This document shows positions 2,458 through 49,889 of a stretch of 64,000 bases of DNA, in pieces. The number at the start of each line of letters is the position of its first letter. Position 1 is the first letter of the stretch. The stretch is taken from positions 242,193 to 306,192 of the forward strand of contig RDEW01000011.1 in NCBI GenBank assembly GCA_011109175.1. Direction: 5' to 3'. Under the pieces are notes generated by a model that was given only the letters and a program-made list of their open reading frames with translations, searched no databases and was not told where the DNA came from. This DNA is from Dicyema japonicum (lineage: Eukaryota > Animalia > Dicyemida). Both the position numbers and the translations under genes were made by a program.

Positions 2458-2910
2458 ATAGTGCTTCCCGATTGAGGGTGCTCGCACCCCCTAGGAATGC
2501 GAGAAATTTTTTAAGGATGTGCGAGAAATAATCTAAAAAATCATGATTACTCGTGTGTCAAAGTCGTGAATTTCATTTGAGGAAGGGCTTTAAATCATAG
2601 ACTGTTCAAAGCATTATGTATTGATTATAATGCAGACGCCACTGTTTTCTTGTATCGTACCAATGTTAGATGGCTGTCAAGAGGTCGTGTTTCGAGAAAA
2701 TAAGCGATAGAAATGAGGATAAAGACCATTTAACTGAAATACAAGCATGTACATCACTGAAAATGTTGTACGACTCAAATTTTTGGAGGTTTTTTGGTGC
2801 AGTTCTCAAGTTGGGTTTCCGACCCTTGGAAAAAAGCACTGCAAGTTCTGGTTCCATTTGCAACAACTTGGCTATGTGAATCTGGATTTTCATCTCCACT
2901 ATATATAAAA
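2458..2910 (+). mobile_element. hAT (Buster/ZBED-like) remnant
   Basis: hAT-like terminus tagtgcttccc...cgcaccccctagg and dimerisation-domain peptide KKALQVLVPFATTWLCESGFS. Confidence 0.7.
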
Positions 2911-3221
2911 ATACTAATATGTCAAATGGAGCTAATTTATGGATTTACGCCGTTCTTCTTCTCCATGTACAATTGTTAATTATTAGTAGGGCATTAATTA
3001 TCTAATAATAATTACCAGCAAGTCTCGACTGGGAAAAGGTGTCAGTACGGCCCCATCCCGAATCAAGTATTTCTCACCAAGAGAAGGGCAAGACCCGCTT
3101 CTGGGCGCTTTCAATCTCCACGATCCAGGCCCACCGATTATAAAGACAACAGGAATCCAGTCGCCTCAAGAGAGCGCTTCACAACCCCGTTGATGGCTGC
3201 GTGCCTAACATTAATAAAAAT

Positions 3222-3478
3222 TATGTTATGTTGTCCAATTAAGTCGTATCCGACCCTTGGAGATCTCATGAACGACTCCCCGATCCGTTGCAATTTAAAG
3301 TAGCCTTGATATAGGCATTCCCGTGACGTCTTCCACCGTGGATAGTCACCGAGTCCTTGGTCGGCCAGGTGTTCTCTTCCCAGTAATTTTACCTTAGCAT
3401 AATGGGTCTTTCCAGTGAATCAGAGCGGACAACATGCCTAAAGAACGCCAATCTGTGTTTTACAATCTTCCTTCTAGC
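3222..3478 (-). mobile_element. RTE-clade LINE, 5'-truncated 3' end
   Basis: Homologous to 20354-20740 and 33985-34372 (RLAFFGHVVRSDSLE..GRPRTRW); (ATAAC)n tail. Confidence 0.8.
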
Positions 3479-4863: not shown

Positions 4864-5231
4864 TTAAAATTTATTATACCAAATTAATTCCTTCTGCTGA
4901 TTACTTGGAAAAAGGTTATCCTTCTGTCCCTTTTCTTTCATTAAATTACCATGGTGTCAGGCAATCCGCTCTCAGGAGGCGTCTAGTACCAAGGCGGCAT
5001 TAAAAATCATTTGGTCTTCTCCACTTACTGGATAATTCTTCTGATTGGTTCTTACAACAGGTGTTCGTTTGAAATAGCTTGTCTCTCCGTCTGCTACATT
5101 GTAAACTAAATGCATTCCTAACGTCAACCAATCGAGATATCTTACCTTCATTATTGCTTAAATAATTCAAATATGTGAATCCACGTGTTCAATCACCAAT
5201 CAAGACCATAGTCAGTAGTGAGAGAGTACAT
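4864..5231 (-). CDS. Putative small spliced gene of unknown function, divergent from XBP1
   Basis: An open frame MYSLTTDYGLDC...RTNQKNYP...ELIWYNKF* can be built with four GT-AG introns (two with GTAAG donors); no homology recognised. Confidence 0.25.
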
Positions 5232-5597
5232 AGTTTCTTCAAGATATTTGAAGTTGAAAGAGAACAAATTTAGCAATAATATCGAGATTATATATCCAAA
5301 TAAGGTTTTCAGAAAATACCTTATTTGGATAAAACGTCATGTATTAATGAAATAATTTTATATGAACTATTAAGTTAACTTCATTCACAACAACAACAAA
5401 TCGATCGTATTATCCATTAAATATTGTCTACTAACACATTTTTGTAAATATTATTAAAAGGCTTAAAAAAACCTTATAATGAGATTTTATTTGTTTATTA
5501 ACTAAATTAAAAATTATAATAATTAAATATTTATTTACTGAATTTTTGAATGGTTAACCAAAATATAATACGCTAATTGACAATCAATACTAATTAG

Positions 5598-6210
5598 ATG
5601 GATGATCATTGTGGTGCTTTTTCTATGTCTATTGATTATTCTTCCAACCACTCAAAAGTTGAGGATAAACTTATGAAACGGTTCAAATGCTTTATTTATC
5701 TCTAGGAAAATAAAAACAGAATCGCTGCTCAAATAGCACGACAGGAAGAAACTCTACATAAGCGATTTAGAGGAACGTCTAAAAGACCTGGAAAAATCCA
5801 ATGCTCTCCTCACTATGCAAAACAAGGGCCTTGATCGACAAAAATAGAGACCTGACTGAAAAAATTACTGAAATAACTCGCCATGGAGCTAGTGAGTCAC
5901 TGCCGCTTTTCAAGTCCGCTGAACTTGAGTCTTCTCCGCAGCAGAAGACGGCAGTGATCACTTCCCTCCTCTTAATAACTCTTTTTTTGATAAAGTCGTC
6001 TTTGACGACGACCCTATTGGAGAGTGGAGTGCGAAACAAAATTTATTTTACGGAGACTCAGATGGATCTTTTGGATGGACCGCTGACGATTTCTTTGCTG
6101 GTGAAATTAATCGTGTTGCAGTTGACGAGGATTGGGCATTTCCTTTTGGTTTGAGAAGTCCGGGTCAGTTTAAAGATTATATTAACTTTGATCCTTTCTC
6201 GCTCAATTAA
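5598..6210 (+). CDS. XBP1: X-box binding protein 1 (bZIP UPR transcription factor); unspliced form stops at 6154, IRE1-spliced form at 6210
   Basis: EDKLMKR|KIKNRIAAQIARDRKKLYISDLEERLKDLEKSNALLTMQNKALIDKN matches the XBP1 bZIP; 25-nt GT-AG intron 5681-5705; hydrophobic C-terminus in the unspliced frame and acidic/aromatic C-terminus in the spliced frame; three small indels in the bZIP (5712-5716, about 5740, 5826-5828) must be corrected. Confidence 0.9.
5891..5962 (+). other. IRE1-cleaved bifurcated stem-loop with a 20-nt unconventional intron (5919-5938)
   Basis: 7-nt loops CCG|CTGA (stem TCAAGT/ACTTGA) and CCG|CAGC (stem TCTTCT/AGAAGA) on a basal stem TCACTGCCG/CGGCAGTGA extended by AGTGA/TCACT. 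Confidence 0.92.
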
Positions 6211-7267
6211 ACTGGGGTGATAATAAATTATTTATTTATTTGGGACTTTTGAATTTATAATAAGCAATTACCTGACTAGTCACGTTTATAGCGTTTTTAA
6301 TTAAAAATTAAGCAAAATAGCTTTATTATCAAAAAATCTAAGTTAATCTAAATAATCTGGTATTTTTGCATTTCTTGTGACCGTTAATGTCCTAGCTATT
6401 CGTGGATCCACGGCTGGCTGTCATAGAAGGATCATTCAAAGAGCGTCAAGGGAGACTCGAAGAGGTCGGAAATAATATTATAATCATCTATTTTTGAAAA
6501 CCTTTTTGGGTCGCTGTTGAACATACGATTTTAAATCACATCTTTATCCTTATCAGCTCGGAATCGATGCAAACTCATAAAGTCAGGGCCCACATTCTGC
6601 AAGGCCTGCCAATCCAAGGAAAAGTCTGTCAAGTGCGTGAACTATGGCAACGAGGTATACAGGATGAGTTATGTAAAGTGTCTCCTCTATCAAAAGACCT
6701 CGAATAAGGTACTAGAGGGAAGACGACGAGTGCCCTACTCTAAGATGGGTAGCGATGTAAGCACTATCCATCGTATGGTAAAAAGCTACTGTATCAGTAG
6801 TGGTTCCACTTTCCCTAATGCCATTATGGCTATAGCCATGTGTTAAAGGAAAGAGAAGGATCCAAAATTATTTTTCAATATTGTTTTGTTGTATCTACTT
6901 GGAATTATTTGTAAATTGAGTGGCCTTTCAATTTTTTGACCTTTTAAAGTCAAACCTCTAGCATAGACTGTGTGTACGTCTAACAATTTTATTATACCTT
7001 CTGGTATAATCAGAGTTTAGCGTCCGACTACTGTAGCAAATTTGGAAAGGAGTTAGAGTTCGAGATGTTTCGTAGACCATAGAACCGATAATCCCACCTA
7101 TGTTATTAACAACATAGGTGCTAACTGTAATCCTCATGTTCACTGTAGACTACAAATCCTTAGCGCTAATTTCTCTATTCTAAGGAACTCGAGTTTATAG
7201 CCAAAATAATCAAAAATTTCAAGATTTTAAAAATAAACACGGAGAAGATTAGAAAGGCAACCATAAA

Positions 7268-49651: not shown

Positions 49652-49696
49652 ATCGTGATGGCCAAGCGGTTAAGGCGGCAGATTTGAAATCTGTTG
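49652..49696 (+). pseudogene. 5' half of tRNA-Ser(UGA), truncated
   Basis: gtgatggccaagcggttaaggcg D-arm and gcaga-tttgaaa-tctgt anticodon arm; no T-arm follows. Confidence 0.65.
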
Positions 49697-49889
49697 TTGA
49701 GATAGTCTACTTTATGCGTCAATCAATTTAAATTTATTTAAAATTAATAAGACAAAATTAAATAATCTTAATTTAATATTGCAACTATTATTCCTCTTTC
49801 TCTTAGCAAAGTTAACTTCTAACCGAAAGAAGACACAGCTTCATTCAGGCCTATTTCTCTCTTATTTTTTTAAGCACTCCCGGGAAATC

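Follow-up and report, generated by a model that had tools for sequence, protein, structure and literature searches.

An XBP1 orthologue with a predicted 20-nt IRE1 intron in the dicyemid Dicyema japonicum

The locus described here raises the question of whether Dicyema japonicum has an XBP1 gene whose mRNA is spliced by IRE1, and whether the piece removed could be as short as 20 nt. The locus lies in a 64,000-nt stretch of genomic DNA (C13:242193-306192; hereafter the window, in which all positions below are numbered and on whose plus strand all features of the gene lie). The published assembly of D. japonicum comprises 67.5 Mb in 377 scaffolds with a mean intron length of 38 bp and is a merger of Illumina/Platanus and PacBio RS II/Falcon assemblies (PMC6736024); the genome sequence that we searched comprised 67,542,437 bases in 377 pieces. 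A preliminary description of the window had proposed a hidden XBP1 at this place, together with a twin-hairpin site, a 20-nt IRE1 intron and a C-terminus coded in two frames, and the Rfam match, expression and conservation in a second species reported below all favour an XBP1 with an IRE1 site.

An XBP1 gene concealed by assembly indels

In the assembly as given, the bZIP domain is spread over three successive frames. Assembled public contigs (Logan) were aligned to positions 5001-6700, and two genomic contigs of about 3.09 kb, X1 and X2, span this whole stretch. Both place an extra A after 5711 and an extra CG after 5738 and have one G fewer at 5826 (5826-5828); contig X5, from a different study from that of X1 and X2, has the inserted CG and the missing G as well. 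What looks like frameshifting in the bZIP is thus due to assembly indels. Compared with the short-read contigs, the assembly carries about one indel per 200 nt in this stretch, a rate that fits an origin in PacBio RS II sequence. The three corrections restore a single frame in a script translation, which starts at ATG 5598 and runs through ...EDKLMKR, followed by KIKNRIAAQIARDRKK LYISDLEERLKDLEKSNALLTMQNKALIDKNRDLTEKITEI... Frame-breaking indels in a published assembly can conceal real genes from annotation, and they probably concealed this XBP1.

Exon 1 (5598-5680) encodes MDDHCGAF...EDKLMKR in its first 27 codons plus 2 nt; the start at ATG 5598, which is preceded by an in-frame TAG, is the probable one. 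It is followed by a spliceosomal GT...AG micro-intron of 25 nt (5681-5705), missing from transcript contig X5 and present in genomic contigs X1 and X2, and its removal joins ...LMKR in frame to KIKNRIAAQ in the script translation of the read-corrected sequence. The part coding for the bZIP up to the predicted 5' IRE1 cut (5706-5918) opens with the basic region KRKIKNRIAAQIARDRKK and continues into the zipper. By script comparison of the read-corrected sequence, this basic region is identical at 14 of 18 positions to residues 75-92 of human XBP1, printed as 75-RRKLKNRVAAQTARDRKK-92 in PMC7564462. It has the pattern N-x7-R with L at position 19, the first zipper leucine lying at the canonical distance of 18 from the invariant N, and the corrected zipper has five heptads with L50, L57, L64, L71 and L78 and then I85. 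Even the uncorrected 31-aa piece at 5737-5829 matches Pfam bZIP_2, with 22.7 bits (cut-off 22.3) and an E value of 1e-4. Just 3' of the second of the two stops described below stands a likely poly(A) signal, AATAAA (6222-6227), and transcript contigs X5 and X6 reach to 6216 and about 6236, respectively. DNA, pattern and protein searches found the locus to be single-copy in the genome and returned no intact XBP1 paralogue elsewhere in it. We conclude that the locus is the dicyemid XBP1 orthologue.

The twin-hairpin site and the two tails

In vertebrates, XBP1 mRNA carries a 26-nt IRE1 intron within a bifurcated stem-loop (PMC4687415, PMC5588925), and the metazoan XBP1 site combines the loop consensus C(C/U)G|CAGC with a central stem between exons and two arm stems that each pair exon with intron (PMC4687415). 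A bifurcated stem-loop of this kind stands at 5897-5957, directly 3' of the bZIP, as indicated by the fold, by Rfam family RF04247 and by conservation in a second species. In the fold of 5885-5970, the central stem S1 pairs 5897-5904 with 5950-5957 (8 bp) and is continued beyond a 1-nt bulge by five pairs (5891-5895 with 5958-5962). Arm S2 pairs 5910-5915 with 5923-5928 (6 bp) around the loop 5916-5922, arm S3 pairs 5929-5935 with 5943-5949 (7 bp) around the loop 5936-5942, and the 5-nt linker 5905-5909 is unpaired. The predicted free energy is -36.6 kcal/mol, and dinucleotide shuffles average -22.7 +/- 3.5 (z -4.0; none of 200 shuffles was as stable). The minimum-free-energy and centroid folds concur on S1, S2 and S3, and the fold is unchanged in the wider context 5850-6010. 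The fold thus bears out the preliminary description as to two 7-nt loops of the form CNG|CNGN on stems at this place; of the basal stem of 9+5 bp that it had proposed, the five pairs stand and the nine do not, since a ninth would compete with the final pair of S3, and the minimum-free-energy structure has eight.

The 5' loop, CCG|CUGA (5916-5922), fits CNG|CNGN with a predicted cut after G5918 and departs from the metazoan consensus at two positions; the 3' loop, CCG|CAGC (5936-5942), with a predicted cut after G5938, is an exact match to it. Between the predicted cuts, each after G3 of its loop, lies the predicted IRE1 intron of 20 nt (5919-5938), as had been proposed. It consists of 4 loop nucleotides, a 6-nt arm, a 7-nt arm and 3 loop nucleotides, with zero spacer, and begins with CU and ends with CG, i.e. 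it is not a GT-AG intron. A reading of 5919-5938 as a spliceosomal micro-intron was rejected on account of these ends and of its retention in a contig from which the 25-nt GT-AG intron has already gone. The preliminary description had further suggested that two splicing machineries act on similar lengths in this animal, which agrees with the 25 nt of the gene's own spliceosomal intron beside the predicted 20 nt.

The two strands of the window together contain five hairpins that have a CNGCNGN loop on 4 or more base pairs of stem (shuffle mean 3.4); this site is the only one with two of them 15-60 nt apart, an arrangement that 1 of 1000 shuffles produced. Run X2 also has a contig of 1501 nt that matches 5911-5948, a candidate for a further twin hairpin. 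In a scan of 251 nt against all 4227 Rfam families, the full model (1-72) of RF04247, 'bZIP non canonical Hac1/Xbp1 intron', aligned to 5898-5956 with 35.7 bits, below the gathering threshold of 41, and an E value of 1.7e-5. Relative to the RF04247 consensus, an extra inner stem of 5 bp is missing here and the intron is shorter. Speed filters removed the match in scans of the 64-kb window and of the genome; just 74 of 1507 candidates were scored in the genome, none of them matching, and the genome scan thus carries no information. In spliced XBP1 RNA an extended stem, ES1, forms from the exons and conceals the site that ligation has restored (PMC4687415). In the fold of the spliced form of species A, 1+5 pairs are added above S1 and a 12-nt loop remains; this extended stem is weakened in species B, the second species introduced below, by two changes in the linker.

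The two frames that meet at the site are those of the preliminary description, with the stops and the lack of an ATG in the second frame as it had given them. Read through the site, the mRNA encodes an unspliced protein, XBP1u, of 177 aa, whose tail (5939-6154) ends at the stop 6152-6154 and contains a hydrophobic region, TAVITSLLLITLFLI, at 5948-5992 (aa 110-124; Kyte-Doolittle 2.56 over 15 aa), about 53-67 aa upstream of that stop. Removal of the 20 nt would lead into the tail of a predicted spliced protein, XBP1s, of 189 aa (5941-6210; stop 6208-6210), in a frame with no ATG. This tail has 18 D/E, 18 F/W/Y and 5 K/R among its 89 aa, a composition that, judged from the sequence, is that of an acidic activation domain. 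After the site, the u-frame is open for 70 codons (P about 0.016) and the s-frame for 89 (P about 0.005), given the density of stop triplets in the window, and the third frame has 13 stops. A word-indexed protein search found no homologue of the u-tail open reading frame (5801-6151). Exhaustive HMMER searches with the acidic tail (5941-6207) gave four matches, which we judged to be compositional: they are long repetitive proteins, matched in 5-13 stretches at about 26% identity and with unrelated Pfam content. In the ESM Atlas the best score for this tail was 0.85, among bacterial hypothetical proteins, and was likewise rejected; neither search detected a homologue of the s-frame tail.

Expression, conservation and splicing machinery

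Transcript contig X5 (556 nt; 5638-6216; depth 273) is without about 24-25 nt at 5682-5702, the gaps summing to 24 when the extra A is allowed for, and the genomic contigs have these nucleotides. X5 is thus derived from RNA, despite the guess 'DNA?' in its record, and the gene is expressed. The 20 nt at 5919-5938 are kept in both transcript contigs, X5 and X6, and X5 therefore represents the unspliced XBP1u form, whose dominance is what one expects without stress. Among the assembled contigs we saw none, and no joint, without 5919-5938, which is weak evidence against excision because contigs drop minor isoforms.

X6, which comes from another study, is a 556-nt contig of a second species (organism B) that covers 5739-6233; the alignment of 495 nt contains 40 differences, about 8%. 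In the stem-loop, all 56 nucleotides that are paired or lie in a loop are free of substitutions (P about 0.009 given 8% divergence), and the two substitutions inside it, at 5907 and 5908, are both in the unpaired 5-nt linker. A change at 5891 abolishes the outermost pair of the 5-bp extension. Organism B keeps the fold, at -34.8 kcal/mol. A substitution-free run of 63 nt anywhere in the 495-nt alignment is not rare (P 0.13), and the weight of the conservation evidence lies in the position of the run, not in its length. The comparison is between two close species, and covariation is absent from it.

The coding parts were compared in the same alignment. The zipper has five synonymous and no non-synonymous changes (P 0.0015). 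Of the 23 changes on the 3' side of the site, 12 affect third codon positions in the s-frame, where 10 are synonymous and 13 non-synonymous; with an expected synonymous fraction of 0.27 this is marginal (P 0.06). The corresponding counts are 5 and 16 in the u-frame (P 0.85) and 3 and 20 in the third frame. In the hydrophobic segment the pattern is reversed: the change at 5972 is silent and that at 5984 replaces F with L in the u-frame, and both alter the s-frame. The u-frame and the s-frame both stay open in organism B. On small numbers, this pattern of substitutions is what dual coding would predict.

The enzymes of the proposed reaction, for which the preliminary description had recommended a search of the genome, are both present. 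The IRE1 locus (C317:454891-457629, minus strand) contains luminal, kinase and KEN RNase parts. Pfam Ribonuc_2-5A, the KEN domain, has one match in the genome, at C317:454891-455145 (77.5 bits), and the C-terminal exon matches the IRE1 KEN domain in PDB with an E value of 3.7e-13. The catalytic stretch reads RTYKG...RDLLRAIRNK / NHY (Y/R/N/H), with a micro-intron in between, and the gene also has a transmembrane-like segment as well as kinase pieces. The luminal domain of human IRE1 is matched by upstream exons in a PDB sequence search (6shc, E 4e-5; 2hz6, E 1e-4); a PQQ_2 profile search for this domain gave a match on another contig only. Three collinear pieces at C257:596840-598288 cover positions 1-426 of the RtcB family PF01139; stops interrupt their reading frame, as micro-introns or assembly indels would lead one to expect.

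Considering these results, we propose the following scenario, which very probably applies: canonical IRE1/RtcB splicing of a single dicyemid XBP1 with a 20-nt intron. The 25-nt spliceosomal intron is removed from the XBP1 mRNA as usual, and translation would yield XBP1u, the bZIP with the hydrophobic tail, which would draw the complex of mRNA and ribosome to the ER membrane as in other animals. Under ER stress, the RNase of IRE1 would cleave each 7-nt loop after its third base, at G5918 and at G5938, and RtcB would ligate the exons. The loss of 20 nt would then switch the frame and join the same bZIP to the acidic, aromatic activation tail of 89 aa, giving XBP1s of 189 aa. Cleavage, ligation, their dependence on stress and the roles of the two tails are what we infer from the features of the locus and the presence of both enzymes.

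Alternative explanations and known systems

The frame switch might instead be wholly or partly the work of the spliceosome. A candidate GT-AG intron of 50 nt (5892-5941; 2 mod 3) begins with GTGAGT at 5892, a strong 5' splice-site hexamer, and closes with a good pyrimidine-rich 3' site, CUUCUCCGCAG ending at 5941; its removal would, without IRE1, put the bZIP in frame with the same acidic tail, shortened by about 11 residues, and the spliceosome of this animal copes with very short introns with weak signals. However, all 50 nt are kept in the transcript contigs of two species, even in X5, from which the upstream 25-nt intron is gone; the GTGAGT sits within a base-paired stem; and conservation tracks the geometry of the hairpins, with substitutions in the unpaired linker only. 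The resemblance of the end at 5941 to a 3' splice site is forced, because the IRE1 loop consensus C(C/U)GCAG imposes the CAG. We regard this explanation, the main rival, as very unlikely. The two reactions might also share one element, in which a 20-nt IRE1 intron is nested within a 50-nt GTGAGT...CAG spliceosomal intron that has the same effect on the frame. Such a dual-use site, which we consider improbable, would allow XBP1s to be made by stress-gated IRE1 or constitutively by the spliceosome, e.g. in a particular life stage. It is also conceivable, if very unlikely, that a true XBP1-family bZIP gene with conserved hairpins is no longer productively spliced by IRE1, the site serving IRE1-dependent decay or XBP1u being the sole product and the second frame a by-product. 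The unspliced form as the only one seen among the contigs and an acidic tail without recognisable homologues agree with this. Against it stand the two loops, each of which conforms to CNGCNGN and has the required G as its third base, their spacing of 2 mod 3, the retention of RtcB, and the openness of the ATG-less 89-codon frame (P about 0.005, as above), which is open in species B as well and shows more third-position changes than the other frames.

Two further explanations deny the gene or the site altogether, and we hold both to be highly improbable. A decaying pseudogene, with real frameshifts in the bZIP and hairpins that are a recent relic, would account for the three frames of the assembly as given, and the preliminary description had itself named real frameshifts with an intact paralogue elsewhere as a reason to abandon its proposal. 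The short-read contigs of two studies, X1 and X2 from the same sample and X5 from the other study, instead restore one frame with their corrections and assign the indels to an assembly that merged PacBio RS II contigs and has about one indel per 200 nt in this stretch. Furthermore, the gene is transcribed and its intron removed, its zipper shows five synonymous vs no non-synonymous changes between species, and the genome holds no other copy. The hairpins might, on the other hand, be a chance structure in a conserved stretch that is dual-coding, in which a 63-nt run free of substitutions would not be rare at 8% divergence (P 0.13). The occurrence of any such twin in 1 of 1000 shuffles, the covariance-model match (E 1.7e-5) and the position of the site directly 3' of the zipper of an XBP1-type bZIP argue against chance.

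With splicing of the 20 nt by IRE1 and RtcB as the preferred reading, the finding suggests that an animal among the most reduced known, with about 5,000 genes, retains an intact IRE1-XBP1-RtcB branch of the unfolded protein response. Animal XBP1 introns measure 23 nt in C. elegans and Drosophila and 26 nt in mammals (PMC5588925). If spliced, the 20 nt would be shorter than any IRE1 intron noted in an animal so far and would extend the animal range given in reviews (23 and 26 nt) down to a length that is otherwise filamentous-fungal. A literature search turned up no description of XBP1 from a dicyemid or another spiralian, nor any animal XBP1 with a 20-nt intron, and all the papers found that pair XBP1 with a '20-nt intron' were fungal. 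With two arm stems and no spacer, 20 nt is close to the geometric minimum, and the 20-nt shift in size would offer a ready marker of ER stress in dicyemids.

The likeness to vertebrate XBP1 extends over the whole arrangement: a bZIP with a basic region 14/18 identical to the human one is followed by twin 7-nt loops, an exact CCG|CAGC 3' loop, and a central and two arm stems, and the frame shift, predicted in the dicyemid, exchanges a tail with a hydrophobic region for an activation domain. The hydrophobic segment, about 53-67 aa before the XBP1u stop, comes near the spacing of roughly 50 aa considered in PMC11077094, and its placement recalls that of HR2 relative to the pause site in human XBP1u as summarised there. 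In contrast to the vertebrate gene, the dicyemid intron has 20 rather than 26 nt, with arms that abut and no spacer; its 5' loop has CUGA rather than CAGC after the cut; the proteins, of 177 and 189 aa, are much smaller; and they are without a recognisable arrest peptide or homology in the tails. Drosophila Xbp1 and C. elegans xbp-1 share with it a short intron of 2 mod 3 and the IRE1/RtcB logic, which is predicted for the dicyemid, whereas their intron is 3 nt longer.

The hacA/hac1 genes of Aspergillus and Trichoderma have a 20-nt intron (PMC6627864), and the filamentous-fungal and dicyemid sites thus share this length as well as a compact twin-hairpin geometry, both falling within RF04247. 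However, ligation in fungi is by the tRNA ligase Trl1 and not by RtcB, fungal regulation adds alternative transcription starts and uORFs, and the dicyemid protein has a basic region like that of animal XBP1. Plant bZIP60 has a 23-nt intron and loses a transmembrane domain on splicing (PMC11077094); it resembles the dicyemid gene in its twin CxGxxG loops and in that splicing would swap a C-terminal hydrophobic segment for an activation domain, and differs from it in lineage, in intron length and in the membrane anchoring of the unspliced plant protein. Set beside these systems, that of D. japonicum looks like a conserved pathway of the expected sort, differing modestly in intron length.

A GT-AG candidate and assembly indels at XBP1

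The predicted IRE1 structure of XBP1 overlaps a 50-nt stretch, GTGAGT...CAG (window 5892-5941), which, at 2 mod 3, is a candidate GT-AG intron. Its removal would shift the reading frame from the hydrophobic to the acidic tail of XBP1, just as excision of the predicted 20-nt IRE1 intron would, and the stretch is kept in both transcript contigs (X5 and X6, the latter from a second species). Around XBP1, the assembly differs from the short-read contigs by small indels at window 5123, 5312, 5711, 5738, 5826, 6490, 6547, and 6635, among them a 9-nt insertion after 6547, giving a rate of approximately 1 per 200 nt. Where the assembly carries these indels, frameshifts should not be given a biological reading. 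Elsewhere in the window, 49652-49704 (+) gave a weak tRNA-like Rfam match, with 28.2 bits falling just below the gathering score of 29.

IRE1 surroundings and RtcB-like copies

The transmembrane and first kinase exons of IRE1 recur as a near-identical, inverted partial copy approximately 2.6 kb past the 5' end of the gene (C317:459194-459710, +; 2795-3311 of the extracted stretch L012, matching 2744-3233 (-) of stretch L001); this copy is either an inverted duplication truly present in the genome or a fold-back introduced during assembly. Within IRE1 itself, the catalytic motif RNK...HY is interrupted by a stop-containing stretch of approximately 27 nt (L001 ~1651-1680, -), presumably a micro-intron within the RNase active-site motif. 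Beyond the full RtcB on C257, approximately 20 more RtcB-like matches occur in the assembly (contigs C135, C355, C223, C46, C112, C1, C268, C315, C334, and C68), most with several stop codons; they are a family of degenerate RtcB copies, which is unexpected given the reduced genome.

A second twin-hairpin contig

The twin hairpins at window 5911-5948 matched, ungapped and with four mismatches, a 1501-nt contig of the genomic short-read run X2, whose depth is approximately one-eighth that of the genome and whose flanks on both sides of the match are dissimilar to the window. A search of the whole assembly (G000) did not recover this contig sequence. The source is probably another organism in the sample, with the host octopus or a second dicyemid as the probable candidates, and the contig would then carry that organism's XBP1 site, likewise with 20-nt spacing.
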